A DNA stretch of 51,969 nt from Octopus sinensis (taxonomy: Eukaryota): the NCBI RefSeq assembly GCF_006345805.1, contig NW_021834289.1, positions 1-51,969 of the forward strand, written 5' to 3'. Below, piece by piece: positions 12,386-45,857 of this stretch. Each line of letters starts with the position of its first letter. Within the stretch, counting starts at the first letter, position 1. A program made the translations under genes and the position numbers. A model generated the notes under the pieces. That model was not told the DNA's origin. It saw only the letters and a list, made by a program, of their open reading frames with translations, and did not search any database.

Positions 12386-13116
12386 TCATTCGAGAACATG
12401 TAGCAAAGACTTCATGTATGCTGCTGCAACAAGCGCTGCATATGGTTGCCAGCCTTTCTTCCCAGTTCCATCAATGTAATCTGCCATTCCTCGAATTACT
12501 AGGAAACTGCAGTTTCTACTTCCTTCCAGCGAGTCAAGAACGGCGTCAAATTCTGAATCGAAAGCCTTGATGCCATTCAGCTGGGAAAAATCCTTGCGCA
12601 TCTTTTCATTTTGGGTTACCATTTTGCCAGAGCCAATAACTCCATATCTAATGGTCACCTGTCCCTCTGTGTAGGACTGATAATGACTACCAGATGGTTT
12701 CGGATGCTCGTATTGAACAACAGTACCATTAGGTTGGGTTGCAAAGAGCTTATCACGCATAATAGATGGACGGTTAAAATCTGATTCTTCACTTTCAAGG
12801 AGATCTCTCCCTTCTTCAATGTAGGGATCCCATGGTTTTGCAATGGTGGGATTCCGTTCAACAGTGCACTTGAGGTTCTCAACAGCTTTCTGAAGGCTGT
12901 GATTGGTTGATGCCCATGACTGTGTCACATAACTGTAGCCAATGGAATTAGGTATATTCTCAGCTCGTTGGCAATGAACATAGAGTGAACCACTTCTGTC
13001 AACAGGCGTAGATACTACCACATCTCCAAGTCGAACATGTTTGTTGAAGTCTGAGAAGTGAGGAACAGCACCACCAACACCAACAAGAATAACATGTTCA
13101 ACATAACTAAAAACGC
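12386..13116 (-). CDS. terminal coding exon of a nucleoside phosphorylase/nucleosidase-domain (PNP_UDP_1/MTAN fold) protein
   Basis: Acceptor ttattttttcag|GC. The frame extends 31 codons above the tracked ORF: VFSYVEHVILVGVGGAVPHFSDFNKHVRLGDVVVSTP...GVIGSG...KAFDSEFDAVL...FLVIRGMADYIDGTGKKGWQPYAALVAAAYMKSLLHVLE*. LxGxGG, RLGDVVVS and IRGxxDY...WQPYAAxxAAAY are hallmark family motifs. 242 full codons plus TGA. Confidence 0.95.
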
Positions 13117-13295
13117 CTGAAAAAATAAAAGAAAAATAAAAAGAAAAAAATTATTAGTATTCTTTCCACACGAAAGAAAAATTAAAAGCTTAACAAAACA
13201 TAGATATTTTTTTTAAAAGAAAACTATTGAAAGAGGAACGATTTCAGATGGTTGATTTAAGAGAGTATAAGAAAATTTAAGAACTTCTGAAATTA

Positions 13296-13640
13296 TTGGC
13301 TCATCCATAAATAATGCAGGTTTTTTTCAATTGCATGAACTAAAAGTCAGAGAGGGATGGGATAAACTACCTGCATCAACTTGCTATAAAAGCATGTAGT
13401 AATTTTACCTTGTACTTATTCTTAGTGCAAGTTTTGAAGAATGCAATTCGATTTTAACAGTTAATTTTTTTTTCAAAGCTATAATGGAAGTGACAAAGGA
13501 GCATTTTCAGCATATTTTGCTTTATGAGATCAATAAAGGCAACAAGGCAACGGAAAGTGTGAGGAATATTAATGCAGTATATGGGGATCGGCCAATAAGC
13601 ATAAGCCAGAATCAACAGTGGTTGCAGAAATTCCAAGTAA
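13296..13640 (+). mobile_element. mariner 5' end (TIR plus N-terminal HTH of transposase), truncated
   Basis: TA then ttggctcatccataaataatgcagg (TIR-like). ORF from 13484, MEVTKEHFQHILLYEINKGNKATESVRNINAVYGDRPISISQNQQWLQKFQ, resembles the mariner HTH. Confidence 0.88.
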
Positions 13641-13703
13641 GACAGAGGAAAAAAAAAATCACCAACGATTCACATGTGGTTACATTTTGGAAAAAAAACA
13701 ATG

Positions 13704-13734
<31 letters not shown>

Positions 13735-13769
13735 GCTACAATAAATAGAGCAAACATTAAACAGTTGTC

Positions 13770-13836
13770 ATTATTAGTACTCAGAAGTTTGAATGTCAGA
13801 GCAAAGAGCTACTGTACATTTTCATCACCTATTAAT
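13770..13836 (-). ncRNA. type I hammerhead ribozyme-like motif (degenerate)
   Basis: Minus strand: stem I attaatag/ctaataat, core gTGATGA, extended stem II aatgt..cag.agc/gct.ctg.acatt, cAAA, stem III ACU/AGU, GUA triplet. C3 is changed and G12 is missing. Confidence 0.55.
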
Positions 13837-14199
13837 GGTAACAGACGCTACAAAGGAAAAAAAAAGAACTATTAAATTTAAGGGAAGTAACTCTAATAGA
13901 TGGAAAAAGAGAAAAAGAAAAAAAGATAAAAATATATAAAAAAGTTATAGAAACATGAAACACCTGCGTTCATAGCATCTACATACATACACATACACAA
14001 AAAGCATGTATATGCACACACACACGCACACACACATATATATATATATATATAAACATATGCAGTACGTACTCATGCATACATACATACATACCCACAC
14101 ACATGTATATATATATACGTACGCAACCTCATCTTCATTACACATAGGTGCTTACATGCATACGTGTAACATAACATATTTATACATATAAATATATGT

Positions 14200-14535
14200 G
14201 TGTGTGTGTGAGTGTATATATATAGACAGACATTCACATCCACCCCACACACACACTCCCATCACACACATACACTTGCACATATACAAACATATACATA
14301 TATATATATACATATATATATATACACATATACATATATATACATATACATATATACATACACATACATACATACATACACACATACATATACATATATA
14401 CATACATATGTACATACATATATATATATACATATATCGACATACATATGTACATACATATATACATACATATATATATATACATACATACATATACATA
14501 GACATACGTATATACATATATATACATACATATAT
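14200..14535. repeat. compound (TA)n/(CA)n/(TACA)n microsatellite block
   Basis: Direct reading. Similar blocks at ~14930-15150, 15480-15900, 25680-26240 and 49000-50030. Confidence 0.95.
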
Positions 14536-14934
14536 AAATAATATGTCAGGCATTATGACAACATAACTCCGTTGTCTGTGTGACTGGTCCGAACAGCGTA
14601 CCTTGCTGACTGACAATACATACCAAGTCTGTCCATTATTTATTAGTAGTGGAGCAGCCCGCTTCTCACCTGAGGGTATCCGCCACAACCCCTGCCCCCT
14701 TTGAAACTTTTTCATTTCATTTTCAGAATTATTTTTCACTTTAGATTTTTTTTCTTGTTCTACACAGAATTTTATTTTTTCTTTGCTCTATCTACACAAC
14801 ATTATTTTTTTTCTACTAACTAAAATTATTTTTATCTTATTTAGACTTTTTTTTCAAAATGCTGCAGCTAGTACCAGTCTACATTGTTTACCGGTAGCAC
14901 TATTAATATATAGCAACTATATATAGTCTGTGTG

Positions 14935-14966
<32 letters not shown>

Positions 14967-15078
14967 ATGTCTATATATCTATATATATGTATACATATTA
15001 TACAAAATATATATACATATATACATACATACACATCATAATAATATCTATATATTATATACATATATATATATACAT

Positions 15079-15141
<63 letters not shown>

Positions 15142-15149
15142 CCACACAC

Positions 15150-15475
15150 ACAAAAGGTATTGTCTACTCCTTATGTAGAGTTTGACCATCCCCTGTACCT
15201 ACACCTTATTACCATCATGGCATCTCCAGACAATGTTTTGAAAAGACACCCCACATACATTGCATATCCAATTTGGACCACAAAGAGTTGCAGTTAAGCC
15301 CTGATCTTTGTGGATCTTAAAATGTCTTTTGAGGTCTCTGTTAAAATTGCAGACCTTATGACATACATGGCATTGAAAAAAGGTGCACAGACATATAGGC
15401 AGAATAGTTGGTAGAGGTTTGTTTTCCATGAGTTCGAAAATGAGATTTTAGCCCAGCAAAAGAAAGGTATGGTCT
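15150..15475 (-). mobile_element. frameshifted multi-C2H2 zinc-finger relic, probably the 3' end of a LINE ORF
   Basis: [18 protein letters not shown], frameshift, CHVCHKVCNFNRDLKRHFKIH (C-x2-C-x12-H-x3-H), then CNVCGVS/FKTLSG with another shift. The LINE origin is inference. Confidence 0.6.
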
Positions 15476-15724
15476 GTCACATACATATATATATACTTAT
15501 ACATATATAGACATATATATATCAATACATATATATATATACATATATATACATTTATATACATATACATGTATGTATGTGTATATATATATATACACAC
15601 ACATATATCCATTTATATACATATACATGTTTGTATGTGTATATTATATATATATATTACACCATATATCCATACATATACATTTATATTCATATACATG
15701 TATATACATACATATACATGTATG

Positions 15725-15759
<35 letters not shown>

Positions 15760-15816
15760 TATATCCATACATATACATTAATATCATATACATGTATATA
15801 CATACATATACATGTA

Positions 15817-15859
<43 letters not shown>

Positions 15860-15863
15860 TATA

Positions 15864-15901
<38 letters not shown>

Positions 15902-16293
15902 CACAGGTTAAAATAGAAAGAAAAGGACAACAATTTGGCTACACTTGACAAAGACATTTAATTTAATTTTTGGCTATACAATAAAAGGTAGAGATATTAT
16001 ATAGCTAAATTGAATTAATCATCAATGTTAAGTCTTGCCAAATTGTTTGCATTTCCTTTCTTCCTTAACCTGTTCCTACCAACTCAAGGGAAAGCTAATT
16101 CTAGCTGTTTAGGATGAGGCAGTCGCAAAATCCTAATTTCAAATGCAGTTCAAACCGGAATTTTAGTGGCACACTCAATTTGAGCACTCAGCACTCATAC
16201 CTATTAGTTTGAGTCACCCTGACAAAAACTCCTCATATCTTTTATATATATACATAATATCTTCTTGTTTCTCTCCTTGCTTTTTTCTGTGTA

Positions 16294-16331
16294 TCTTTCT
16301 GTCGAAGAGCGTAGGCTCGAAACGTAAAAGA
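16294..16331 (+). ncRNA. minimal hammerhead-like motif
   Basis: tcttt CTGTCGA a gagc gtag gctc GAAA cGTA aaaga. Stem I is 5 bp, stem II is 4 bp, with an ACGU palindrome; A6 is replaced by U. Confidence 0.6.
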
Positions 16332-16886
16332 CTTTTTCTATTTCTATTCCTGAGTGCTATACTAATACATTTGTTTGTTTGTACTCCACCTGCCTTCGTC
16401 TTTTGTTTATTTTTGTAAACTTTCCCGTTACATACATATATATATATGCATACATACATATACATATGTATACATTCATATACAGACATATACGCATATA
16501 TACATACTAAGTATATTAAAATATATATATTAAATATATTAAAGTATTTAATATATATATTAATTTCATTTTCCATAAAAATTTTTTTGTTCATTATTTT
16601 TCATTATGTTTTGAAAGACATCAAGGCAACTAAGCATATTTACAAGTATAGCTACAAATATTGCATAGATTTTTCAAATAAATTTTTTTTTTGTGGGTGG
16701 GGAGGTTAAATGATCAGAAGTGTGTCTGGTTTGAGTAACTCCTAATGACTTTGCATATAACATCATATAATCAAAAGTGTGTGTGTGTGTGTGTGTGTAT
16801 ACATTTCAAAATGTAATTACAAGAAGATCGTTGGTGATTTTTTACCCCCTCCATCTTCCTTTTCTCTTGGACTTTCCTCTGTCTCC

Positions 16887-16923
16887 AGATTCTGAAGAAG
16901 AGCTTTGCTCAAAACGTAAAACT
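16887..16923 (+). ncRNA. minimal hammerhead-like motif
   Basis: agatt CTGAAGA a gagc ttt gctc aAAA cGTA aaact. G12 is replaced by A; stem I has one mismatch. Confidence 0.6.
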
Positions 16924-17069
16924 ACCTTTCTTTCCTTCCTTGAGCGTCTTTTAATACTGTGTACGTACCACGTCCTCATGTTGTTTTTTCTCATGATTTT
17001 TCTTTGTTTTATATATATACATACATATATATACATGCATACATGTATATACATGCATACATATATTAC

Positions 17070-17363
17070 GTGGAGGCACATGGCCTAGTGGCTAGGGCAG
17101 TGGACTTGCAGTTGAGGGATCACGGGTTCGAATCTCAGACCGGGCGATGTGTGTATTTATGAGCGAAACACCTAAGCTCCACGTGCTCCAGCTGAAGGTA
17201 ATGGTGAACTTCTGCAGACTCTTTCACCACAACTTTTCTCTCACTCTTCCTCCTGCATTTTGCAGCTCACCTGTGACGGACCGGCGTCCCATACAGATGG
17301 GGAACCTATACGCCAAGGAAACCAGGAAACAGGCCCTATGAGCCAGGCGTGGCTCAAGAAAGA
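17070..17363 (+). mobile_element. tRNA-derived SINE family C (tail C1)
   Basis: gtggaggcacatggcctagtggctagggcagtggacttgcagttgagggatcacgggttcgaatctc...tgtgacggaccggcgtcccatacagatgggg...ggctcaagaaagaac. Confidence 0.9.
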
Positions 17364-17556
17364 ACAAAATCTACTTAGAGACATGTGTGTGTGTACTGTT
17401 CTATATATGTGTGTGGCCGCACACACATTATCCGCACCAACGCACGGTTGCAACACCATATGGTTGTACCTCCAACCGTGCTGTCTTCTGCTGTGAAATG
17501 CGGCCACACACATATATAGAACAGTACACACACACATGTCTCTAAGTAGATTTTGT
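17364..17556. repeat. perfect 58-bp inverted repeat with a 77-nt spacer
   Basis: 17364-17421 is the exact reverse complement of 17499-17556. Spacer bases 17427-17496 are identical to 17962-18031. Confidence 0.95.
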
Positions 17557-18333
17557 CTCGCCCCATATAATACACCTAATATTCTTTAAATAGTCAGAAC
17601 TTTAGTCTCGGTCACAAAGAACATCTACGCACACCCGTGCCCTCACCCACCGGAATGAACGTGCCTGACCCGTTAAAATCCTCAACGCACCCACCACCCG
17701 TTTCAACATACATTGATAAACAGTTTGGCCATTGGCTCTTAGGAGCCTCGTTCGATTTGTTTTGCTCCGCCTCTGTTCTGTTTTTGTTTATTCCAACGGA
17801 TCTTCTTATTTCCTTGAGAAGAGAAAGACACAATATGGTCTCAGTATTCAATCGGAATTGGTAAATTGTGCCTTTCGAAACACGTGTAGAATGCAATAAA
17901 ACGATTTCTGTTCAATTCGTTCAACTCCATTTCTTCAATTCACTAATAATATTAAAATTCAATTATCCGCACCAACGCACGGTTGCAACACCATATGGTT
18001 GTACCTCCAACCGTGCTGTCTTCTGCTGTGATTTTGCTACCAAGGTATCGGTTTAAACTTTTGATTAACCTGCAACAAGATTATTCATCTTTCTATTTCA
18101 CAAAATATATATATATATATATTTTCTATGTGATTTCAAAGTCATTTATTGTTAAAAACTATTGTCACATGACAATAATACTGTCAACTGTAGCAACAAA
18201 TAGCAATGGGAGGAGGAGGAGGAGGAGAAGCAAAAGGGGCAGGGTTGAGGTAGAATAGAAGCAAGGGCAAACTATCACTAGCATTATTTTGTTTAGAACA
18301 TGATGGAGAATAAACGCAATTGAGTTTACTTAC

Positions 18334-18456
18334 CTAAAAGTCTTGTGATGGTGTTTTCGGCTGAAATCATCTTCTGCTCTGCTGCACCTTTTGAGAGCTT
18401 TGTCGAAACCACAATATGTTTGCCAATCTGTCCCAGTGTATATACTTGAGATTCAC
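18334..18456 (-). CDS. internal coding exon (123 nt, phase 1-1) of the nucleosidase-domain gene
   Basis: atcttcag|GT GAA TCT ... CTT TTA G|gtaagt. Encodes (G)ESQVYTLGQIGKHIVVSTKLSKGAAEQKMISAENTITRLL(G), in frame with both neighbouring exons. Confidence 0.93.
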
Positions 18457-18530
18457 CTGAAGATATCAAGGACATAAACATCAACCACATTATTAACCAA
18501 ACTCACATGGTTCTAACGATCATGTCAAAT

Positions 18531-18569
<39 letters not shown>

Positions 18570-18644
18570 TATATACACATTCTTGCGGTGCTCCAGCATG
18601 GCCGCAGTCAAATGACTGAAACAAGTAAAAGAGCAAAGAGTAAC

Positions 18645-18815
18645 AAAATGGGTTAAACAGATCTAAATTAAAACCTTCCCTCAAAATTTCATGTTGTGTT
18701 CCAAATACCAACTTAATAACGACAAAGTTATTTTACTAAATTCTTTGTTATTTCCAAAATTTATTGAAATAAATGCAGTGTATTTCAACAGAAATATGGT
18801 AACAAAAGGGTTAAA
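18645..18815. mobile_element. second TTAA-flanked MITE family
   Basis: Ends gtatttcaacagaaatatggtaacaaaagggTTAA; a partial body repeat follows at ~18860-18905. Confidence 0.5.
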
Positions 18816-19615
18816 ATGATCTGAATCAAAACCTTCGATACTGACTTAATAATGAACCAAAAACCTCTATCAAACTTTCATGTTAATTTAGGTTCCAAAC
18901 ATAAGTTAACAATATAGCAACAAAAAGTATAAGTTTACTATTAACATGAAAGTGTTGTGACTGATATTTATTGCATACAACTAGTTTTACACCAAAGAAC
19001 ACTACTTCAAAAGACATTCAACAATTTTTCCTGAAGTTCGCAAAGGTCCACTATCGTAAGAAAACAAAAACAAAACAAACAATAGTCTTAAAGTACATCT
19101 GAATATTTCATTATAATTCATTTTATGTTCTGACATTTTCAGACATTTTTCTCTGAAAATATGTTAATATATCAAAAAATAATTTTTAAAAAACACTTGA
19201 CATAAAAAAAACAAAATGTTGCATAAAATATAAGCTACTAAAAATTCTCTTGTGTAGGCGAAAACATAAAGGACACCAACAGAATCACATGCCTGAGTAA
19301 TATATTTAATATAATGAGCTCCTAGCACCCAAAAGCTAATAGGAAAATTTAGTCAGATGAATAACCATAAAGAATGTATTGCAGGCTTAGACCATCCAGT
19401 GTTACATCCATTTCCTAATGACACGCTACCAAAGAATCAGGTTGGTGCAGAAGAGCATTACTGATAAATATCTGTAACCAGCGAGTTATGTAAAGTGGTA
19501 GATAAAAATTTATATGTGCATTTAAAATCAAGAAAACAAAAATCTAAGAAATGAAGGCCAATACATCAGGAAAATTAGTTTACATTATATATAATATGGA
19601 AAATCAGCTTCAAAG

Positions 19616-19655
<40 letters not shown>

Positions 19656-19710
19656 TTCACAGATGAGATTCAGATATTCTCAGTTTAGAAGACACTTAAT
19701 AGTGCTCAAA

Positions 19711-19755
<45 letters not shown>

Positions 19756-19925
19756 ATGGTTTTTGATAAGCAACATCAACTTTAGTAATTCTGTAAATAA
19801 TAATAATAGTATTTTATGAATTACGGAGATGTACTTGCTTAGCAAGTGACTTGATTTGAGATCGTTTGCTGGAACGAAAACAACTGCAGCGTGGAAGGTG
19901 TTTGTATGTGCATACAAACACACAT

Positions 19926-20031
19926 ATATTTTCGTCGCTTTGAGATCGCGACCTGTTCACTGACAAGACTTTGTGATGCATCACAAAGTCTTGTCAGTGA
20001 ACAGGTCGCGGTCTGAAAGCGACGAAAATAT
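19926..20031. repeat. 106-bp spacerless palindrome (53-bp arms, 2 mismatches)
   Basis: atattttcgtcgctttgagatcgcgacctgttcactgacaagactttgtgatg|catcacaaagtcttgtcagtgaacaggtcgcggtctgaaagcgacgaaaatat. Confidence 0.95.
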
Positions 20032-20939
20032 TTTGACAAATTAAATTTAAATGTTGAAGTGAATCTAACGGTTTTTGTGTGTTTCTTAAATGGCTTACAA
20101 ACACCTTCCACACTGCAAGTGTTTTATGAGCTTGAAGCTTATAAGCAATCACAGTGCAATGACTAAAGAAAATAGTCTAATAACGGGGCAAATAAGCCCT
20201 CAACGGAAATACACGTATGGGAATATTTGTCTTTTGTGTATTTGCAATAGATTTGTTTCAGTCATTAAGTAATGGAATGCAACGCATCCTGGCTTTTATT
20301 AACTGTAAAGTTATTTATATATCAGTGTGACTATTTCTAGCCTTTCCTCTTTGTCTTTTTTCTTCTTTCATCTCTTTCCTTCTCTCTCCCTCTCACACAC
20401 ACACACTTACTTCTATTTCTAGCCTTTCTTCTTTCTCTTTTTTGCCACCTTCATCCCTTGATTTCCCTATGTTGCGCTCACTCTCTCATGTCCTCTTTCT
20501 CCTCTGCCTGTTGATGACACATGACCCATGGCCATTTTGTCTTTCATACTCTCCCTTTTACACACCAGTCACATAGCTGACTGGTCCTAAATTCTCTGTG
20601 TTCCAATAGCACAAATCTTGCTATTTCTTGTTTTTCTTATCCTTTTGGATAGCCTTCAAGTGACACATGAAGGGCACCCATGCAGGTGACACATAACAGA
20701 CAACCATGCCAGTGACATGCGAAGAGCACCCACTACACTCTTGGAATGGTTGACATTAGGAAGGTCATCCAGCCATAGAAATCAGGTGAAATCAGACTGG
20801 AACCTAGTGCAGCTCTCCGGCTTATCAGTTTTCAGTCAAACCATCCAACCCATGCCAGCATTGAAAATGGATGCTAAATGATGACGACGATGATATACGT
20901 ATTTATATATAATATATAGCACCATACAAGTGTGATTGT

Positions 20940-21400
20940 TGACAGAGCGGCTAACCGGCTTCCGTGCCAGTGGCACATAAAAGGCACCATTCAAGTGTGA
21001 TCATTACCAGCGTCGCCTTACTGGCACTCGAGCCCCGTGCTAGTAAGGTACCAAGAGCACCATCCAAGCATGATCATTGCCAGAGCAGCCAACTGGCTTC
21101 CGTACCTGTGGCATGTAAAAGGGCACCATTCGAGCGTGATCGTTACCAACGTCACCTTACTGGCAACTGTGCTGATGGCATGTGTAAAAAGATTCGAGTG
21201 AGGTTGTTGCCAGTACCGCCTAACTGGCCCTCGTGCAGGTAGCACGTAAAAAGCACCCACTACACTCTCGGAGTGGTTGGTGTTAGGAAGGGCATCCAGC
21301 TGTAGAAACTTTGCCAGATCAAGATTGGAGCCTGGTGCAGCCATCTGGTTCGCCAACCCATGCTAGCATTGAAAGCAGACGTTAAACGATGATGATGATA
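20940..21400 (+). mobile_element. repeat family D, long form with tandem subrepeats
   Basis: Several gtgcc.gtggcac.taaaa.gcacc units precede the ggaagggcatcc core and (GAT)n tail. An older copy lies at ~20690-20890. Confidence 0.85.
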
Positions 21401-22229
21401 TATATATATGCAAATCTAGCCAGTTAAGTAGTGAATCAAAACAGTAGAAAGTAGCCATACATTAAGACCCATGTTTCTATTCATTGTTATTAGTTTGCTG
21501 TATGTTTATTTTATATAATTTGCCTAAACAGTCTGCTACAACAAAATTGAGGCAGTAACACATTTTTTTTATTTGCTCTTTTTATTTATTTCCTTTTAAA
21601 TGTATTTCTTTATTGCTTCAATTTATTTTTTTTTATTCTCCAAAATTTAAATAGCTTCAAATTATAATGGTTACATTTTTACAAATAATATACAGCCATT
21701 CAAATCAAGAGGGTTACAAAAATTAACATCAACAACATCAATTGTTATCTTGTATTTTAATTAATTAATTAATTAATTTAACAACTATAGGGCCATCAAT
21801 AATATTGTTCAATTATAATAGTATTTTAAATAATGAATCTATGTTTATAATATTTTATCTAATTTTGTAGTATGTATTTAAAATATAGATCAATGACATT
21901 TAAAGATATATTATAAGTGTAACAGATATATATAATAGTGTACAAATGTAACCATACGTTTAATCACACACAAGGTTTGGAGATATATTATATGAGTTCA
22001 TACAACAGCAAGTGAAACAATGATTGCAGATAATATTATTAAAGGAACTTTATTTGGCTGTTAAAATTAGCATTCAAATGCTTGTTTATAAATATGTAAA
22101 TCCAAGGAGACATTGCACGCGTACGTGCACATCATATGACTGCATATCCTCGGGAGTGTCCGACCAAAAATATATTATATGTATGCATATATCGCTACAT
22201 GATAAACTATGTCCATATTAATGACTAAA

Positions 22230-22470
22230 ACAAACACACATCCGTTTTCCGTGCTAGCATGGGTTGGACGGCCAGATGGCTGCACCAGGCTCCATTCTGA
22301 TCTGGCAGTGTTTCTACAGCTGGATGCCCTTCCTAACACCAACCACTCCGAGAGTGTAGTGGGTGATTTGGTACGTGCCACCGGCACAGGTGCCAGGGAG
22401 GCGGCAGTGGCCATGATCAGTTGGCGCTTTTTACATGCCACCGGCACAGAAGCCAGTCAAGGCGGCACTG
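22230..22470 (-). mobile_element. repeat family D
   Basis: gctagcatgggttggacgg...ggatgcccttcctaacaccaaccactccgagagtgtagtgggtg...gtgccaccggcac. Confidence 0.85.
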
Positions 22471-22485
22471 GCATATACATATATA

Positions 22486-22524
<39 letters not shown>

Positions 22525-22639
22525 AATGTATGTTTACAAGTGTGCATATCATGAACACACCAAAACGAACATACACAAGCATAAATGCAAGTTTCTCTGC
22601 TCTCTCTCTCTCTCTAAATATATATATATATATATATAA

Positions 22640-26699: not shown

Positions 26700-27020
26700 A
26701 TCATCGTTTAACGTCTGTTTTCCGCGCTAGCACGGGTTGGACGGTTCGACCGGGGTCTGGGAAGCCAGGGGTTGCACCAGGCTCCAGTCTGATCTGGCAG
26801 TGTTTCTACAGCTGGATGCCCTTCCTAACACCAACCACTCCGCGAGTGTAGTGGGTGCTTTTTATGTGCCACCGGCACGGGTGCCAGGGGAGTCTGGCAT
26901 CTGTCACGATCGGTTGGTGCTTTTAACGTGCCACCGGCACAGAAGCCAGCCAAGGCGGCACTGGCATCAGCCACGTTCGGATGGTGCTTTTTATGTGCCA
27001 CCGGCACAGAAGCCAGTCGA
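26700..27020 (-). mobile_element. repeat family D, long form
   Basis: catcatcgtttaacgtc...ggatgcccttcctaac, followed by three gtgccaccggcac subrepeats. Confidence 0.85.
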
Positions 27021-27124
27021 GGCATATATATATATATATATATTCAGTTGCTGGAGTTATAGAATCTAGGTATTTCAATGTGTAGGATGCCAGAGAGAGA
27101 GAGTGTGTGTGTGTGCGTGTAAAG

Positions 27125-34977: not shown

Positions 34978-35150
34978 TAAAAAACACCCACTACACTCAC
35001 GGAGTGGTTGGTGTTAGGAAGGGCATCCAGCTGTAGAAACACTGCCAGTTCAGATTGGAGCCTGGCACAGCCTCCTGGCTTCCCAGACCCTGGTCAAACC
35101 GTCCAACCCATGCTAGCATGGCAAATGGATGTTAAACGATGATGATGATG
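34765..35150 (+). mobile_element. SINE A head/core followed after (TA)n by a family D 3' half
   Basis: caggagtggctgtgtagtaag...gaaagaatcccatcg (TA)n, then cacccactacactcacggagtggttggtgttaggaagggcatcc...gatgatgat. Confidence 0.8.
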
Positions 35151-37743: not shown

Positions 37744-37774
<31 letters not shown>

Positions 37775-37850
37775 GCCTGTGTGTGTGCGTGTTTGTGTGC
37801 GTGTTTGTGTTTGTGTGTGTTTGTGTTTGTGAGGGTGTGTGTGTATTTGT
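37590..37850. repeat. long degenerate (GT)n microsatellite
   Basis: About 260 bp of interrupted GT repeats. Confidence 0.95.
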
Positions 37851-38309
37851 GAAGGTTCTTATAGGAAATAATAAAATAACAGAAATTATTTAGGATACTA
37901 AACTAATATTAACGAAATTATCAAAATAAATACAGAACAACATATGAATATAAAAAACAGATAAATAAATAAATAAATAAATACAGGTGCAGCACTGAAG
38001 TGTGAAATGTTATGACTTACCAATCCTCCGTGATTTCTCTGCCATAATGACCAAATAAGAAGAACAAGATGAAGACATATGCAGGAAGGAAGGAAGGAAG
38101 GGGAGGAGGACGACGATGACGAAGACAACAACAGTGATGATGACAAGATCATCAAAAGGAAGAATAATATATATTTCTCTTAATTGGCATCAAAATATAA
38201 TAATTAAGGTAAAGGATGACAATTAAGGATGAATGTCGTTAAGCATTTTTCCCAAACTCTGATGATTCTGCTAGCTCACCACTTTAATAATAATAACTAA
38301 TTATTCATC

Positions 38310-38640
38310 ATCATCATCATCATCATCATCATCGTTTAACTTCTGCTTTCCATGCTTGCATGGGTTGGACGATTTTGACTGAGGACTGGCGAAACCAGAT
38401 GGATGGCTGCACCAGGCTCCAATCTTGATCTGGCAGAGTTTCTACAGCTTGATGCCCTTCCTAATGCCAACCACTCCGAGAGTGTAGTGGGTGCTTTTAC
38501 GTGCCACCAGCACGAGGGCCAGTCATGCGGTACTGGCAACAGCCACGCTCAAATGGTGCTTTTTATGTGCCAACTGCACAGGAACCAGTCCAGCAGCACT
38601 GGCAACGACCTTGCTCAAATGTTTTTTCACGTGCCACCAG
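38310..38640 (-). mobile_element. repeat family D, long form
   Basis: (CAT)n gtttaac...gatgcccttcctaatgccaaccactccgagagtgtagtgggtgc plus subrepeats. A diverged plus-strand copy lies at ~39015-39245. Confidence 0.85.
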
Positions 38641-39852
38641 CACATTATTATTATTATTAATATTATTAAGGTGGTGAGCTGGTAGAATTGCTAGCATGCC
38701 AGGCAACATTCTTAGCACTATTTTGTCCATCTTTATGCTCTGAGTTCAAATTCTGCTGAGTCAATTTTGCCTTTCATCATTTTGGGGTCAATAAAATAAG
38801 TACCAGTTGCATACTGGAGTTGAGGTAATTGATTTACCCCCACCCCACCTGAACTTGCTGGCCATGTGCCAAAATTTAAAAACAATTATCATCAGTATTA
38901 TTATTATTATCATACTATTATTATTATTATTATTATTTTTGTTGTGGTACTCAAGAAGACCTGTACTCTACAGCAGAAGTGTTAAGACCAGTCCATCTGG
39001 TGGCGAAAAGCACTCCTGACAGTGCCACGTAAAAGCGCCCGTGCAGTGCCACTTAAAAACGCCCCTGCAGTGCCATGTTAAAAGCATCCAGCATGCTCTG
39101 TAAAGTGGTTGGCATTAGGGGAAGCATCCAGACATAGAAACCATATTAAATCAAACTGGAGTCTGGGGCGGCTCCCCAGCTTGCCAGCCCTGGTCAAACC
39201 ATACAACCCATGCCAGCATGGACAACAATCATTAAATGATTATTATCATTATTTATTGTTAATATTATTATTGATGTTATGAAAATGATGATGATGTCTT
39301 TTTAACATAAAACAACAATAGATTCAATGACTGCATGGATAAGATGCCAGACATCTAATCACAAGCTCATAAGCTCAAGTCTTAACTACAGCATGTTATA
39401 TATGGTCCTTTTTGGATGATGGACAGATAGAATTGTTTTGAGTGTTGGTATCGATGTTGGTATAATTCCATTTCTTTGAGGTATTGCCCATCTAGGCAAA
39501 CACCTGGAGGTAGCTAAGGAATGGATGCACTGAGGCATTGATATGAACTGATAAGGCGGCAAGCTGGCAGAAACGTTAGCACGCTAGGTGAAACACATAG
39601 CCGTATTTGGTCTGCTGTTACTTTCTGAGTTCAAATTTCCCCAAGGTCGACTTTGCCTTTCATCCTTTCGGGGTCGATAAATTAAGTACCAGTTACGCAC
39701 TGGGGTCAATATAATCGACTTAATTCATTTGTCTGTCCTTGTTTGTCCTCTCTGTGTTTAACCCCTTGTGGGTAGTAAAGAAATAGATATGCAGCATCTA
39801 ATTATCTAATAATAACTATTTGGAACTTGATGTAATTAGATTACACCAAGTT

Positions 39853-40436
39853 CCAAAATCGATAAGAGTATTGAATCACCTCTTCATATGTTATGTGGCA
39901 GCAAAAATGTAACAATCTCACACATTGTGAGTGAGTGTAGAAAACTGGCTCAAAAGGAACACAAAAGGAGGTATGATAATGTAACCAGGTATGTTCACTG
40001 GAGAATGTATGAAGAAGTACGATTTTGAAAGCTCATTGAAAAGATACACATATAAACCAGAAGGTGTCACTGAGAATAATGAGCAAAAGATCTTGTGGTA
40101 TTTTATACCATCCAGTGTGATTTGGTGATTGACGCTTGGAGACCAGACATTGTTGTAGTTGATAAAATGAAGAAAGAAACCAAGATCATAGATACTGCCA
40201 TGCCTGGAAGGGGTGTGCGAGTGGAAAATAAAGAATCGGAAAAGATTGAGAAGTACAAGCCACTAAAAAGATGAGATTGCACGAATGTGGGTAACAAATA
40301 AAATAACTGTGGTCCCAGTAGTTGTAGGGGCATCAGGTGCATTAACAACCAGGTTGGAGGAATTAGGGTAGAAATTGCTCGGAAAACTGCTTTATTGGGG
40401 ACAGAGAGGATTTTGAGACTGATACTTGAATGTTAA
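39853..40436 (+). mobile_element. non-LTR retrotransposon C-terminus (CCHC plus restriction-like endonuclease; R4/NeSL-type), pseudogenised
   Basis: KIDKSIESPL..CGSKNVTISHIVSECRKLAQKEHKRRYDNVTRYVHW, then after shifts IQCDLVIDAWRPDIVVVDKMKKETKIIDTAMPG...EKIEKYKPL. RPD..D is the RLE motif. Confidence 0.85.
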
Positions 40437-40437
40437 G

Positions 40438-40538
40438 TATGATATACCCTCCAACCCTCCAACCTTCAACAGGTGTCTTGACAAAATTTTGAACCTAGGT
40501 TCTCATTTCTAAGGTATATTTTTATGTTGTTACTACTA

Positions 40539-40574
<36 letters not shown>

Positions 40575-40860
40575 TCACAGGTATATGGCATAGTGGTTAA
40601 GAGCACGAGCTACTAACCCCAAGATTCGGAACTTGATTCCAGGCAGTGATCTGAATAATAATAATAACAACATCAAAAAATACCTTAGGAATGAGTACCC
40701 AGGTTAAAAATTTCCCCTGAGACACCTGATGAAGGCTTGGAGGGTATATCAGCCAAAACATTGTGTTAACAAAAAACAAGATGAGGGAAAATATCCGTCA
40801 AATGTAAATAATGTACATAATTCCTCATCTCTTAAATATAGAACTGAATTATCATCAGTA
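40438..40860. mobile_element. tRNA-headed element with a hammerhead-like tail, present as an inverted pair
   Basis: The plus copy (40579-40860) has an A/B-box-like head and gacac CTGATGA a ggct..agcc aAAA catt gtgtt at 40721-40767. 40438-40578 is a reverse-strand partial copy of the same tail. Confidence 0.75.
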
Positions 40861-41289
40861 TCATCATCATCACTATTACTACTGCCACCACACATTTTTG
40901 TCAATATAACAACAAACAGAATAGTAGCAGTAACAACAACAACAACAACAATTTATTTCATATTTAAAGAATTAAAAATGTTATACTCTCTTCCCCTCTA
41001 TTTTTCTGTCTCCAAGACTCCTGTAGCTGTCAGAAGACAGTTGGCAGTTTTCAAGCAATGAATTATAAATTACTTCCATTGTAGCTTTTCCAGATGCCCC
41101 CATTTCTTAATTCTTAATTGAAACATTTTAAACTACAGTTAATTTCATTTGACATGTTAACAAGCGAACTATAAGCGTCACTGTTGCTTTGTTCATTCGA
41201 CATCTTTTTGTGGAAAGACTATTGCAAATTTGGTACTGTGTTTAGCAAAAAACTTTGAATTGGTTGTTGAGACATAGGAATAAAATGTC

Positions 41290-41725
41290 TGACTAGATGG
41301 TTCATTGGTTCAAGCTGTACACTATGTCACTGGTCTTGCAAGTAGTGTTTAATCCTTGATCTTGACAAAGAGGGATATATACAGCAGAATGGGGTGCCAC
41401 TGCATGGTGCCAAAGATCCCAATATCACCATCAAAATACAGGACCAGATACTGCAACAGCTTGGGTTTCAGGGGACCACAGCTCTTCAATATCCTCCCTA
41501 AATGCCTGAGAGACCTGCATGGTGTGGATTCCTTTAAAACTAAACTGGATCTCTTCTTGTCAGAGGTTCCAGATGAACCTACCTCTCAGCAGGAAACACA
41601 GATGCAGGCAGTGGTGTCGAACTCCCTTGTTGACCAAGTGCCATGTATCAGAGATGGTTTCACATACAAGTGTAGCTCATTCAACGGTGGTGCCCCAGCA
41701 TGGCCGCAGCTTTTGGGCTGAAACA
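41290..41725 (+). mobile_element. 3' end of a CR1/L2-clade LINE
   Basis: ORF ...SLGFRGPQLFNILPKCLRDLHGVDSFKTKLDLFLSEVPDEP... is typical of CR1/L2 ORF2 ends. It ends in ggtggtgccccagcatggccgcagcttttgggctgaaaca. Confidence 0.85.
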
Positions 41726-41742
41726 TTTCTAAGGATTATACA

Positions 41743-41777
<35 letters not shown>

Positions 41778-41849
41778 GAGTTGCAGCCAGTTTTTCCAAC
41801 TGAGAGGATATAAAACCCTGTCTGTCTTTCTTCAACTTCTCTTTCTCTC

Positions 41850-41886
41850 TACCCACTGACGAAGGATTGCATCTGAAACGTTAGAT
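41850..41886 (+). ncRNA. hammerhead-like motif with complete core
   Basis: CTGACGA a ggat tgc atct GAAA cgtt. Core and GAAA are intact and stem II starts with a G-U pair, but stem I does not pair in this copy. Confidence 0.5.
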
Positions 41887-41989
41887 ATTCAACTTCTCAC
41901 GGCAAGTTCATTGTCCCCCTTTCACTTTTTTCTATATTTTTACAAGTTTTGCCGACGCAGAACTACACAAGATTCCTTGTAGTTTGCCT

Positions 41990-43545
41990 AATTATATATA
42001 TATATATATATTACATATGTTATAATTTAAAACGAACAGTAAGTTGTCATTATAGTACTAGGAGTTTTGAATGCAGAGCAAAGAGCTATGGTGCATTTTC
42101 GTCAGTTATTAATGGCAACAGAAGCTATGAAAAACGGTTGAATAGAAGGGAGGTTACTCTAATAGGTACAAAAAAGAAAAAAAGAAAAACGATAAAAAAA
42201 TACACACAACCATATTTTCACAACTCATAGATATAAAACCTCCAGTGTTCATAAAGTCTACATACATACACACTCACACAAACATGTATATGCACATGCA
42301 CATATACACACATACATATATGCGCATGTACGTACTCATACATATACACATATCTACACACACACATGTATATGGGTGTGTGTGTGTGTGTGTGTGCAAT
42401 TTCATCCTCATATACACATGGGTATCTGCATATATACATATTTATTTAGACATTTATATATATAAATACATATCTATATATATACAGGCATACAGTCACA
42501 CTCCTGCATATATGTATACACACACATATATATAAACATATATGTACATCATCATCGTCATGTGACTGTATGCCTGTATATATAGACATATATTTATATA
42601 TATATAAATGTCTAAATATATATATGTATGCATGCAGACACCTATGTGTATATGAGGATGACGTTACACATACAAACACACACATACATACATATGTGCC
42701 TGTCCTCCTATCCCAGAGATACACCCACACATATACAAATATATGCATATCCATATAAATGAAGGTGACGCATGGATGATGGTCGCACTTATGCACAAGA
42801 CACAGCCCTATACTCATATTACAAATATATACACATACACATATACACACGCACACACATATACACATAAAATATATATATACATATACTCACACACGTA
42901 CACATTCACACGCATATACATATAAAATATCTACATACATATACTCACCCACGGACACATTCACACAATTAAAAAGGAAAAAATAAAAAAATGAAAAAAT
43001 ATATACAAAAATTTAAAAATTAAAAGAAGACATAGGGAAGCTTATGCAGAAACATAGTAAAAATGTGGATTCTATCTGTGATCTTGGGGGGCCCTAAACC
43101 ATAACAGGTATTTTGTCACATACGGACATGAGCCAAAAAGTTCAGTTCTTGAATTTAGACATGTAGCAGGGTCCAAAGAACGTTTGCAGATGGGCCATCT
43201 TTCCATATTACAAAGATCGCACTTGCCACTACCATTGGTATAAGGTCTACACTTGGCCAAGATCTTCAAGTAAATCCTATAGCTGACACCTTCTTCTTTT
43301 AAGAACCATATATAACTGGATAATTTGGTAGGTCTTCGTTTATTCCAGTGTCTGAAGCTTAAGTTGTGATCGTTGAAACTTGCTTTGAAATTTCCCTCAG
43401 TGATACCCACATATCACTTTGACAAAATTGTGTTATTAGCATTCATAGAATTTATGGTGGCTTCATAAATAATAGCCTCGGAGTACTATAACGAGTATTA
43501 TAATGACAACTTACTGTTTGTTCTAAATTATAAAATATCTAAATA
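41990..43545 (-). mobile_element. 5'-truncated Penelope-like element (GIY-YIG C-terminus, 3' UTR, hammerhead, inverted terminal piece)
   Basis: 43072-43413 reads YVGITEGNFKASFNDHNLSF...TKLSSYIWFLKE...CRPYTNGSGKCDLCNME...LNSRTELFGSC, the PLE endonuclease region. Hammerhead-like motif at 42048-42113 (-). 43495-43535 is the reverse complement of 42020-42060. Confidence 0.85.
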
Positions 43546-43661
43546 ATCCTCTATTTCTCAAATATCGAGGTCTCATTTTTTGTTGTTACTTTTTATTATA
43601 TACATATATATAATAGGATATTGTAGTTCGCTGGAAGCATTGTGTATTGTTTGTGAAATGT

Positions 43662-43981
43662 AACGTGTCTTGAATGGTACAACAATACAGAGCAGACTAT
43701 AATAACTATTATAAAATAATTTAATTATTCATAGTGTAATATCATATTTTGGAATAGAAAAATTCCTTCTTGAGAGATTGCTGGGAAGTAATGGAGACAC
43801 TGTTATTGCCGGTTTTCCAATGGTTAGAAAACTGACTGTAACAGTAACTCCATTACTTCCTAGCAATCTCTGAAGAAGGAATTTTCTATTCCGAAATATT
43901 ATCTTAGACTATGAATAATTAAATTATTTATAATAGTTATTGTAGTTTACTCTGCATTGTTGTGCCATTCCAGACACGTTT
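43662..43981. mobile_element. foldback MITE-like palindrome, ~320 bp
   Basis: About 140-bp arms: aacgtgtct.gaatgg.acaacaat.cagag ... ggaatagaaaa.ttccttctt.agagattgct.ggaagtaatggag, and its reverse complement. Confidence 0.88.
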
Positions 43982-44224
43982 TATAAAAAACCAAAGAGTC
44001 CAGTGATATTGTTGTCGCTGTAGTGTTTTAGTCACTATGATAGAAGACATTCCAGTGGTGACAATCCTAGATTTTTAGACATAATCTATGTCAGACTACT
44101 TTCTAAAATCAGACTGTTCGTTTGTTGTAAAGCTGGCAAATTTGCTTGTGAAATTAATTCATAATTTCTTAAAATTATCTTCCTTGTCTCCTTAATTCTC
44201 AGCTGAGTAAACTGGAGCAATGTC

Positions 44225-44545
44225 AAATGATTAGTGACTTACAATCGTGAGTTTGTGAGTTCGGTTCCCAGACTGGGCTGCATGTTGTATTCTTGAGCAA
44301 GACACTTTATTTCACGTTGCTCCAGTTCACTCAGCTGTAGAAATGAGTTGCAACGTCACAAGTACCAAGCTGTATTGACCTTCGCCTTTCCCTTGGATAA
44401 CATTGGTGGCATGGAGAGGAGAGGCTGGTATGCATGGGTGACTGTTGGTCTTCCATAAACAACCTTGCCTGGACTTGTGCCTCAGAGGGTAATTTACTAG
44501 GTGCAATCCCATGTCATCCATGACTGAAGAGGGTCACCCTTTATA
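44225..44545 (+). mobile_element. SINE family E (CORE-like)
   Basis: cttgagcaagacactttatttcacgttgctccagttcactcagctgtagaaatgag...cttcgcctttcccttggataac. Confidence 0.85.
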
Positions 44546-44559
44546 TATATATATATAAG

Positions 44560-44870
44560 GGTAATGGTAAAGACTCCCTTCAGTCATGAATGAGCATGGA
44601 TTACACAGAAAGTTACCCTCTGAGGCACAAGTCCAGGCATCGTGATTTATGAGAGACCAGCAGTCACCCATACATACCAGCCTCCCCTCTCCATGCCACT
44701 GATGTTATCCAAGGGAAAGGTAAAGGGGCCAATAAAGTTCAGCACCAGTGACAACTCATTTCTACAGCTGAGTGAACTAGAGCAATGTGAAATAAAGTAT
44801 CTTGCTCAAGAACGCAACACACAGCCAGGCCTGTAAATTGAACTCAGTACCTCTGAGCCATGTGCCTTCA
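44560..44870 (-). mobile_element. SINE family E (CORE-like), inverted relative to the previous copy
   Basis: gttatccaagggaaagg...ctcatttctacagctgagtgaactagagcaatgtgaaataaagtatcttgctcaag. Confidence 0.85.
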
Positions 44871-45183
44871 TATATATATCTTCTTAATATAAATTTGAGT
44901 GATGTTCCTCTGTCCACTATGTTTTTATGTTCATTAAATCTTCCAAGACAGTTGTTTTTGAAGGGCTGCCTTATTGGGGCCCCACTGACGACACCCCGCC
45001 CCTATTTTTACTGCATTTACCTCTCTTCTATGCTTATTGATTAAACTATGATCAGCATCAATGCTTAGCACTTTTGCAGAAATAAGTTTCATTACACAAG
45101 GGTAGGGGGTGAAGGGATTCAAAGATGCCCTCCGCAGGAGCCATCCTGAATGCTGTCCGAAGGACAGCTTCGAGGCTAGAATA

Positions 45184-45240
<57 letters not shown>

Positions 45241-45246
<6 letters not shown>

Positions 45247-45502
45247 GGTTGTATACTGTCAACATAACATGACAGTCCCATAAAGGGAATTACACCACCG
45301 TTATTTAGCCCTAGGAAGCATTGACGCTTCCTGTTGGCTTTGACACATTTCCTGTGTCCGTATATTTGCGAAGGGGGGGCAAGCACCTCCACTAGGTAGG
45401 ATTAGCATCGACAGAAGCGTCGATGCTTCCTAGGGCTAAATAGTGGTGGTGTAATTCTCTTTACGGGACTGTCACATTATGTTGACAGTATACAACCACT
45501 CT
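45241..45502. mobile_element. MITE with ~90-bp terminal inverted repeats, related to 29731-29938
   Basis: gagtggttgtatactgtcaacataa...tatttagccctaggaagca / tgcttcctagggctaaata...ttatgttgacagtatacaaccactc. Confidence 0.88.
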
Positions 45503-45716
45503 ATCGCTCCACCACCACTCATGTCTCTTTGAGACATTTAGAAATTCAATATTTCTAATATATATATATATACACATACATATATAAGCACATGTGTCTG
45601 GTACATGTACATCTATTTACTAATGAAAGCCCTTAAATGATAGAAGAATGGTATTAAGATGCCAAAATATCAAAACAGACAAGAAACAAATTTTATAAAA
45701 ATATTTCAAAACTTAC

Positions 45717-45857
45717 CATCCGTTTTGTTCTTGAAATAAGTAGATTTGTTGTCAATCATGGCATCTACAGCCAGTTTCTCAGAGTAAAGGCTGGTGATGA
45801 TTGCAATGGTAGGCTGTTCGTGATATTGAAGGAATGGCAAGTCTTTAACCATTTTCA
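45717..45857 (-). CDS. coding exon (141 nt, phase 1-1) with the N-terminus of the nucleosidase domain
   Basis: ttttttttatactttgaacag|TG AAA ATG ... ACG GAT G|gtaagt. Encodes KMVKDLPFLQYHEQPTIAIITSLYSEKLAVDAMIDNKSTYFKNKTD(G). TIAIITSLYSE aligns with MTAN KIGIIGAMEEE, and it splices in frame to 18456. Confidence 0.92.

Follow-up and report, generated by a model that had tools for sequence, protein, structure and literature searches.

An octopus MTAN-fold domain with affinity to defence-type PNPs: a candidate immune effector in a multidomain protein

We report that the window analysed here, an entire Octopus sinensis scaffold of 51,969 bp, holds the 3' part of LOC115230770, and that this part is best explained as encoding the whole effector domain at the C-terminus of a cytosolic protein of ~760 aa with several domains. 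As to its function, the explanation that we consider the best, and in which we place moderate confidence, is that of an MTAN-fold effector domain which would hydrolyse ATP or dATP under the control of N-terminal modules and have a role in defence or death. The gene is already in RefSeq, where its products (XP_036355706.1 and XP_029656765.1) are those of the gene in the window itself; in databases it is named only “uncharacterized protein” or “unnamed product”.

Three minus-strand exons, A (45717-45857), B (18334-18456) and C (12386-13116), join at canonical phase-1 splice sites into an ORF of 329 codons when counted from the ATG at 45852. An earlier note, made from the sequence alone, had put the product of three exons at about 330 aa, and the 329-aa model is indeed identical to XP_036355706.1 (isoform X2) and to the final 329 residues (432-760) of O. 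vulgaris CAI9734748.1; tblastn of six homologs against the window matched exactly these exons, with no other convincing match. Exon A is an internal coding exon (acceptor ...tttgaacag/TG, phase 1; donor G/gtaagt), with its first in-frame ATG read from the sequence at 45850-45852; its product, ...KMVKDLPFLQYHEQPTIAIITSLYSEKLAVDAMIDNKSTYFKNKTD(G), comprises strand beta-1 and Glu25 (codon 45778-45780). Since this peptide occurs verbatim, after ...NSSNM, in O. bimaculoides XP_052829688.1 and O. vulgaris CAI9734748.1, the acceptor is used and the protein extends upstream. The N-terminal exons are off the scaffold, whose end truncates the N-terminus of the O. sinensis models, and in the O. bimaculoides annotation the gene is divided between LOC106882433 and LOC106873116. 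An alternative cassette exon of 18 nt (AGAAATCACGGAGGATTG; 38021..38038, minus strand; acceptor tatggcag/AG, donor G/gtaagt, phase 1 on both sides) adds EKSRRI to the beta2-beta3 loop, and RefSeq isoform X1 XP_029656765.1 (335 aa) equals our model with EKSRRI following residue 45; read-through at its donor gives a tail ...EKSRRIGKS-stop, as in the O. bimaculoides LOC106882433 models. Exon B (123 nt; acceptor ...tcttcag/GT, donor G/gtaagt, phase 1 on both sides) encodes (G)ESQVYTLGQIGKHIVVSTKLSKGAAEQKMISAENTITRLL(G). Exon C, the last coding exon (acceptor ...ttttcag/GC; 243 codons plus the TGA at 12386-12388), holds HVRLGDVVVS, an insertion of ~120 residues, D273-S274-E275, R295 (codon 12491-12493), D299 (codon 12479-12481) and WQPYAALVAAAY; a candidate polyadenylation signal AATAAA, read off the same strand, lies at 12302..12307, 79 nt past the stop codon. 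The ORF of the PNP domain is intact and under purifying selection, dN/dS being 0.27 for exon C in comparison with a related octopus genomic contig. A Logan search found a single contig, which was genomic.

Beyond the window, the winged-helix-like region that the earlier note had expected upstream was borne out: Pfam HTH_69 occurs in relatives, and exon A is joined to exons further upstream in the models of O. bimaculoides and O. vulgaris. The 760-aa O. vulgaris ortholog consists of an N-domain, a galectin-like Methyltransf_FA module (a beta-sandwich), a winged helix (HTH_69) and then the PNP domain, and this is the best explanation of the full architecture; the combination of Methyltransf_FA, winged helix and PNP is mentioned in no paper found in our literature search. 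The octopus domain is best explained as a member of a winged-helix+PNP family that spans the protostomes. In this family it would fall into a lophotrochozoan paralog group, with members from chiton, nemertean, bivalves, gastropods and cephalopods, that has the additional Methyltransf_FA module between N-domain and winged helix and stands apart from the canonical octopus copy LOC106873546; two paralogs are retained in octopus. Arthropod and nematode Zalpha+PNP relatives have been assigned to a Cap17-like clade (Rousset et al. 2023, bioRxiv 10.1101/2023.01.24.525353), among them the Zalpha-like winged-helix + PNP proteins CG12065 of D. melanogaster, H14E04.2 of C. elegans and A0A7M7MVF0 of A. 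mellifera. Like these, the octopus protein has an HTH_69 winged helix directly N-terminal of the PNP domain; the domains are 42-49% identical (in comparisons with members other than CG12065), have their invariant residues in common, and the insect and nematode members form one 100/100 clade with the octopus domain. Unlike these, the octopus gene lies in the paralog group with the Methyltransf_FA module, and by sequence the Zalpha-likeness of its winged helix is not significant (E ~0.5). The observation of the earlier note, which likened the gene to a poorly studied invertebrate family, is confirmed, but its novelty was overstated in view of the RefSeq annotation and the Cap17-like assignment: the family is already noted in the literature, and the octopus gene is a further member, new here.

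The AlphaFold2 model of the domain (pLDDT 92.6, pTM 0.92) confirms an MTAN-type nucleoside phosphorylase/hydrolase fold, the top 46 Foldseek matches in the PDB all being MTA/SAH (or futalosine) nucleosidases (E ~1e-12, TM ~0.7, target-relative). The fold, which the earlier note had given as PNP_UDP_1/MTAN, is assigned here from structure and profiles and not from Pfam, since PNP_UDP_1 itself scores 17.2 bits on the octopus protein, under the gathering threshold of 25.1. The motifs quoted in that note were all found on the minus strand: IAIITSLYSE (45778-45807), RLGDVVVS (13010-13033), FDSE (12551-12562), IRGMAD (12479-12496) and WQPYAA (12434-12451). Two independent profile alignments, one an hmmsearch of PDB MTANs with the family profile and the other an hhalign comparison with E. 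coli MtnN, reproduced its residue assignments, with E25, D273-S274-E275, R295 and D299 corresponding to Glu12, Glu172-Met173-Glu174, Arg193 and Asp197 of E. coli MTAN. MtnN is the best solved-structure match, at 14-16% identity and with pairwise similarity that is not significant; the octopus domain differs from it by Met173 to Ser, Glu172 to Asp, ~70 more insertion residues, other flanking motifs and a multidomain setting. By alignment, the putative equivalents of the MTAN catalytic triad (E25, E275, D299) and R295 are shown to be conserved, and across 66 family members E25 and D299 occur in all, R295 in 64, D273 in 65 and E275 in 58.

This conservation bears on whether the domain might be catalytically dead or non-enzymatic (serving as a scaffold or to sense a ligand), or else a duplicate with poor expression heading to pseudogenisation. 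Some O. bimaculoides models do end after exon A, the introns, at 27 kb and 5 kb, are very long and contain transposable elements throughout, and the ribose site has a changed motif; however, the O. sinensis and O. vulgaris protein models show the same uninterrupted ORF, the dN/dS is low, the catalytic equivalents are all kept and (nearly) invariant in 66 members from many phyla, and the AF2 model is confident. We regard this as very unlikely.

In favour of an effector domain, the octopus model matched the bacterial PNPs P0132, P0122 and P0100 in phmmer at E 1e-27 to 1e-29, as compared to E 2 for E. coli MtnN and 4.8 for Udp, with no match to DeoD or Amn. The three bacterial proteins are set in defence islands (TIR/SEFIR, SIR2_2, integrases, a pAgo-associated PNP) and give E values of 1e-16 to 3e-25 with the PADLOC CBASS “Effector PN-superfamily” profile; this profile is matched by 41 of the 66 animal members, the octopus model itself having no PADLOC match at E <= 1e-3. 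With the animal profile, hhalign gave 2e-58 for the bacterial group, the closest non-animal relatives of the family, 6e-47 for the fungal group, 3e-28 for the assayed NLRN (the PNP domain of a Hyaloscypha variabilis fungal NLR, A0A2J6RX17; phmmer E 7e-18), 3e-8 for the assayed DDAN and 1.9e-3 for MtnN, whose probability was 14% versus 100% for the bacterial and fungal groups. The signature RLGDVVVS / IRGxxDY / WQPYAAxxAAAY, ascribed in the earlier note to fungal NLR PNP domains, is common to these, the octopus domain and bacterial defence-type PNPs, and is absent in E. coli MtnN, DeoD, Udp and Amn; NLRN and the octopus domain both carry (H/D)xRLGDxxVS, IRGxxDYxD and WQxYAAxxAAAY and a long insertion C-terminal to the GDVVVS strand. 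An insertion of ~100-125 residues with PW...RP...TD[KR]L[FY]...HP (TDxLF in the comparison with the bacterial defence-context PNPs) is common to the animal domain and defence-type PNPs, its length being 126 residues in octopus, 54 in MtnN and 66 in DtcC. Cap17 (CBASS) and DtcC (Detocs) resemble the octopus domain in fold and in the position of the catalytic Asp (D472, D353 and D299, respectively), but E. coli Cap17 (a partial sequence) and V. alginolyticus DtcC are very distant (hhalign E 1.6e-3 and 1e-2), score no better than MtnN in single-sequence comparisons and are without the long insertion. NLRN differs in its setting: it is the N-terminal domain of a STAND/TPR NLR, as compared to the octopus position C-terminal to a winged helix.

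On the profile similarity, signature motifs and common insertion, and not on the tree, the domain is not housekeeping-like in sequence and shows a specific affinity to PNPs of bacterial defence islands and to fungal NLRN. In a small phylogeny, an approach called for in the earlier note, the stem of the animal clade is long (1.44), NLRN and the octopus domain fall in separate clades, deep nodes including the placement of Cap17/DtcC are without resolution, and the AU test gave p 0.31 for a single clade of animals + bacterial + fungal groups and p 0.33 for animals + MtnN, rejecting neither. The non-rejection of animals + MtnN, the MTANs as best solved-structure matches and an MTAN equivalog as the sole NCBIfam match might be read in favour of a housekeeping salvage enzyme (an MTA/SAH nucleosidase, MTAP or PNP-like) fused by chance to other domains. 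We consider this extremely unlikely, since that NCBIfam match reaches 24 bits where the cutoff is 169, the phmmer and hhalign values set MtnN far behind the defence-type PNPs, the insertion is longer and the ribose motif changed, the architecture is multidomain with a winged helix, and octopus retains two paralogs.

NLRN and DDAN have ATP>dATP nucleosidase activity and are toxic in E. coli (Rousset et al. 2023). Like Cap17, DtcC, NLRN and DDAN, which act on ATP/dATP, the octopus domain would hydrolyse the N-glycosidic bond of an adenine nucleotide, ATP or dATP being the most likely. Alternatively, it may be an active N-glycosidase from this family whose substrate is neither ATP nor dATP, a possibility that we think rather unlikely; the ground for it is that the ribose-binding E-M-E has become D-x-E in the animal family (D-S-E in octopus), where position 274 holds S, T, Q, C or A but in no member Met. 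E-M-E is kept by all four assayed ATP nucleosidases with sequence for that site, and is found in all housekeeping enzymes, in bacterial and fungal defence-type domains, and in DtcC, NLRN and DDAN; the long-stemmed animal clade also has its own invariant basic residues (K26, K65, H113, R115, R260). On the other hand, the adenine-side R295 and D299 and the water-activating Glu25 are unaltered, replacement of E by D is conservative, and NLRN and the bacterial group are very similar to the animal domain elsewhere. The substrate in such a case could be a different adenine nucleotide, a nucleotide derived from NAD or used in signalling, or a modified nucleoside, and an immune or regulatory logic could still apply.

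Returning to ATP or dATP as the substrate, we propose that D299 would protonate the adenine while E25, E275 and R295 position the attacking water, and we conjecture that activity is held off until the N-terminal modules (winged helix and lectin-like sandwich) have bound a ligand or brought about oligomerisation; cellular ATP would then be depleted, resulting in a cell-autonomous defence or death response. Consistent with all of the evidence, the octopus domain would be an active nucleosidase, not a housekeeping one, and possibly an immune effector.

We note that all of the motifs quoted in the earlier note are present on the minus strand of the window, an AT-rich stretch of animal DNA with ~35% G+C and 5% microsatellite. 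The three-exon model of about 330 residues proposed there also holds: exon A (45717-45857; acceptor cag/TG, donor G/gtaagt), exon B (18334-18456) and exon C (12386-13116, ending in TGA), all on the minus strand, have canonical splice sites and are separated by phase 1 introns, and the joined ORF, counted from the ATG at 45852, has 329 codons and is identical to RefSeq isoform X2 (329 aa) of the O. sinensis gene LOC115230770. Isoform X1 (335 aa) is the same model with EKSRRI inserted after residue 45. Independently of this RefSeq isoform, we located the alternative 18-nt exon that encodes EKSRRI at 38021-38038 of the minus strand, within the 27-kb intron, with a good acceptor, a gtaagt donor and phase 1 on both sides; the insertion maps to the PNP domain, in the loop between beta2 and beta3, which is modelled with low confidence. 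Truncated O. bimaculoides models that end in ...EKSRRIGKS and a stop represent read-through of the donor of this small exon. When six homologs were compared with the window by tblastn, matches were confined to exons A, B and C, with nothing convincing elsewhere, and no upstream exons were found in the ~6 kb beyond exon A (45858-51969). Scans of the window for tRNAs and Rfam families found nothing.

Mariner/Mos1-type transposase remnants lie at 13403-13741 on the plus strand (HTH_48, E 3e-15), in the intron just upstream of exon C, and at 62-235 on the minus strand, where a ...PPYSPDIAPSDFHLLRSLQ... fragment at the start of the window has no Pfam match. A reverse-transcriptase fragment upstream of exon A (50900-51259, minus strand; RVT_1, E 3e-5) and a C2H2 zinc-finger fragment in the intron between exons B and C (15202-15447, minus strand) look like decayed repeats. 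A SINE-like element of ~230 bp is represented by about eleven copies or fragments, 70-84% identical, in both orientations in introns and flanks (2313-2509, 6528-6650, 20727-21382, 22100-22520, 26711-27044, 34981-35132, 38402-38604 and 47439-47539).

The three exons encode the end of a much longer protein. The last 329 residues of the 760-aa O. vulgaris protein CAI9734748.1 are identical to our model, and the exon A peptide occurs verbatim in the O. bimaculoides LOC106882433 models, where it follows ...NSSNM, and exon A is therefore internal. The N-terminal exons are not on this scaffold; in O. sinensis, part of them is on another scaffold, of 58,187 bp (XP_029656375.2). The latter protein is misnamed [quoted passage not shown] (CPAMD8), a name that appears to derive only from its Methyltransf_FA module. 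The best protein match in our first search, O. bimaculoides LOC106873116 (96%), is a 255-aa model that begins inside exon B, and RefSeq splits the single O. bimaculoides gene into LOC106882433 (N-terminal) and LOC106873116 (C-terminal). This analysis corrects split or truncated models of the gene in the annotations of two octopus genomes. The identity of exon C to a related octopus genomic contig is 93.6%, as compared to 86% for the whole aligned stretch, with a dN/dS of 0.27; the gene is intact and constrained. A Logan contig for a 92%-identical protein, considered as a possible transcript, proved to be genomic and served for the dN/dS estimate instead.

The MTAN-type fold proposed in the earlier note is borne out by an AF2 model of the 329-aa ORF, built on an alignment of 66 family members (pLDDT 92.6, pTM 0.92), and by its Foldseek matches in the PDB. 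There are 474 such matches at E <= 1e-3, and the top 46 are all MTA/SAH nucleosidases or futalosine hydrolase (E ~1e-12, TM ~0.7 relative to the target, 14% identity); the MTAN mutants 1z5n and 1z5o (Glu12Gln, Asp197Asn) also appear among the Foldseek matches. Profile searches of the model alone with Pfam, PADLOC and NCBIfam gave only sub-threshold matches, so family-level and structural evidence is needed. For instance, PF01048 (PNP_UDP_1) scores 17.2 bits, under its gathering threshold of 25.1; many close relatives, as well as bacterial and fungal relatives, pass that threshold, and the octopus shortfall therefore reflects the limited sensitivity of the Pfam model. A phmmer search of exon C against PDB sequences matched only phospholipase A2, due to chance, and a Foldseek comparison with viral structures, which for the PNP model returned only giant-virus nucleoside phosphorylases, was uninformative.

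It is established for MTAN that Asp197 donates a proton to adenine N7, with Glu12, Glu174 and Arg193 placing the water and the ribose. The catalytic mapping given in the earlier note, including a Ser at the Met173 position, was recovered both by hmmsearch of the family profile against the PDB and by hhalign against MtnN, the E. coli enzyme: octopus E25, R295 and D299 correspond to Glu12, Arg193 and Asp197, and D273-S274-E275 to Glu172-Met173-Glu174. E25 and D299 do not vary among the 66 family members compared, which span many phyla (66/66 each); R295 is kept in 64/66, D273 in 65/66 and E275 in 58/66. At position 274 the residue is S, T, Q, C or A, and in no member Met.

With regard to the affinity of this domain, an exhaustive phmmer search returned 4010 cluster representatives at E <= 1e-3. 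They comprise three groups: animal proteins, 570-770 aa long and with a C-terminal copy of the domain, proteins of fungi, and long proteins of STAND or NLR-like type. Two of the last group were looked up and proved to be bacterial and in defence-island settings. The first of these (P0132), a PNP-STAND protein of 1450 aa, is encoded near a TIR/SEFIR gene. The second (P0122) is encoded in a bacterial defence-island-like locus on a metagenome contig (L006, 598-9869) together with a SIR2_2 gene, phage integrases and a second PNP gene, whose product is fused to the PNTD domains associated with short pAgo proteins. Every bacterial relative tested has a match to the CBASS profile “Effector PN-superfamily” of PADLOC (1e-16 to 3e-25), and one of these proteins is fused to a ThsB-like TIR; 41 of the 66 animal members match the profile too, and the octopus model does not at E <= 1e-3. 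A search of bacterial genomes for related loci with the animal alignment found none because its search patterns were animal-specific. By direct phmmer, the model matches the bacterial defence-type proteins at 1e-27 to 1e-29, as compared to E = 2 for E. coli MtnN and 4.8 for Udp, with no match to DeoD or Amn.

The sequences of four assayed ATP nucleosidases were taken from Table S8 of Rousset et al.; that of Cap17 is partial and without the C-terminal motifs. Two of the four, the fungal NLRN and the sponge DDAN, match the model by phmmer at 7e-18 and 5e-3, respectively. With hhalign, the profile of the animal winged-helix and PNP family aligned to the bacterial defence-type group at 2e-58, the fungal group at 6e-47, NLRN at 3e-28 and DDAN at 3e-8 (95% probability), as compared to 1.9e-3 and 14% probability for MtnN; similarity to partial Cap17 (1.6e-3) and to DtcC (1e-2) was not significant. 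A specific affinity to experimentally verified Cap17-like members is thereby shown for NLRN and DDAN.

Shared motifs point the same way. The motifs HVRLGDVVVS, IRGxxDYxD and WQxYAAxxAAAY, close to the signature recognised in the earlier note, occur in all three groups (animal, fungal and bacterial defence-type), and none of the E. coli housekeeping enzymes has them. Between the GDVVVS and GSG strands the octopus domain has 126 residues and the bacterial and fungal groups 97-120, as compared to 54 in MtnN, 66 in DtcC and 74 in DDAN, and the insertion carries PW...RP...TD[KR]L[FY]...HP landmarks common to the octopus, bacterial and fungal sequences. The alternative that this is a housekeeping enzyme, which the note had argued against, is further opposed by the NCBIfam equivalog NF004079 (24.4 bits, where the cutoff is 169), by the D-S-E motif, by the 126-residue insertion and by the 760-aa multidomain protein in which the domain resides.

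For the phylogeny suggested as a check, a careful IQ-TREE tree recovers the animal clade with full support (100/100) on a long stem (1.44), but neither this tree nor a quick one resolves the deep nodes. A clade uniting the animals with the bacterial and fungal groups is not rejected by the AU test (p = 0.31), and neither is one uniting the animals with MtnN (p = 0.33); since the tests do not discriminate, we claim no clade placement from our own tree. The non-housekeeping assignment rests instead on the phmmer and hhalign affinity, the motifs, the insertion and the published large tree. Membership of the animal family is supported by this animal clade and by the model having all 36 of the family's invariant columns. 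The octopus gene clusters with chiton, Littorina and Elysia proteins (100/94), within a lophotrochozoan subgroup (100/90) that also includes nemertean, scallop, Mya and Mytilus proteins and stands apart from the canonical mollusc clade with the other octopus paralog, LOC106873546. As this octopus gene shows, cephalopods keep two paralogs under purifying selection, one of them with an added lectin-like module.

The ribose-site motif is where the animal family departs from the assayed enzymes. E-M-E is found in MtnN, DeoD and Udp and in the bacterial and fungal defence-type PNPs, with D-M-E in Amn, and the assayed DtcC, NLRN and DDAN read LEMEM, VEMEA and GEMEG; the octopus domain has instead D273-S274-E275 (12551-12559, minus strand), and the animal family is D-x-E throughout. 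Because of this replacement, the substrate of the octopus PNP domain could be other than ATP or dATP.

Upstream of the PNP domain, AF2 resolves the N-terminal 478 residues into three folded modules: an N-domain, a beta-sandwich and a winged helix. The N-domain (residues 27-168, pLDDT 85-94) is a mixed beta/alpha domain, and a death-fold reading, prompted by a faint DED match, was accordingly rejected. Pfam assigns residues 191-325 of the O. vulgaris and O. bimaculoides proteins to Methyltransf_FA (78 bits), a module that in O. bimaculoides (P0287, residues 183-326) is modelled as a galectin or ConA-like beta-sandwich. Foldseek matches of the N-terminal model are mostly galectin, L-type lectin and GH16-type sandwiches (galectin CRDs at TM 0.55-0.64, E ~1e-4), and this likeness suggests that the module is a ligand-binding fold and not a methyltransferase. 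The winged-helix-like region that the first reading had placed upstream of the window was indeed found there, directly N-terminal to the PNP domain, as HTH_69 at O. vulgaris residues 368-420 (16 bits, sub-threshold, and above threshold in relatives) and as an AF2 winged helix (pLDDT 85-92). Against the PDB, its profile reaches the Zalpha domains of ZBP1 and DLM-1 at E ~0.5-0.6 only, among generic winged-helix matches. Our literature search found no paper on the combination of Methyltransf_FA, winged helix and PNP.

ATP-degrading PNP effectors are an established anti-phage strategy of bacteria. Cap17 of CBASS and DtcC of Detocs cleave ATP and dATP to adenine and a sugar triphosphate, and the PNP domains of NLRN and DDAN perform the same cleavage and are toxic in E. 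coli; the same study placed proteins of arthropods and nematodes that combine a Zalpha-like domain with PNP (CG12065, H14E04.2) within the Cap17 clade and speculated that they degrade (d)ATP upon sensing of foreign nucleic acid (Rousset et al. 2023, bioRxiv 10.1101/2023.01.24.525353). Our literature search found no later functional work on genes of this type. The observation that opened this analysis is confirmed and its interpretation supported; the octopus gene, annotated before this analysis but uncharacterised, belongs to a family flagged as Cap17-like. The novelty is modest, and no new kind of system is revealed.

We consider that the octopus protein is most likely a cytosolic sensor-effector, in which engagement of the N-terminal modules would lead the PNP domain to split ATP or dATP by hydrolysis at the N-glycosidic bond. 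The main caveat to this mechanism is the D-x-E in place of E-M-E. Alternatively, the lophotrochozoan paralog group might form a distinct sensor-effector, in which the galectin-like module and winged helix serve as ligand sensors, the PNP effector with its D-x-E site acts on a substrate other than ATP or dATP, and the 18-nt exon tunes a loop adjacent to the active site; we regard this joint reading as improbable; if it is true, animals would have a new version of immunity by nucleotide depletion. The points worth experiment are the lectin-like module and the changed ribose motif, the latter being shared by a whole animal family where the nucleoside phosphorylase and nucleosidase sequences compared are otherwise E-M-E (D-M-E in Amn). 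Only one fungal and one sponge protein have been shown to be active among the eukaryotic counterparts of these bacterial effectors, and whether the animal family, a protostome family that includes Drosophila and C. elegans genes, cleaves ATP is thus a concrete and cheap biochemical question.
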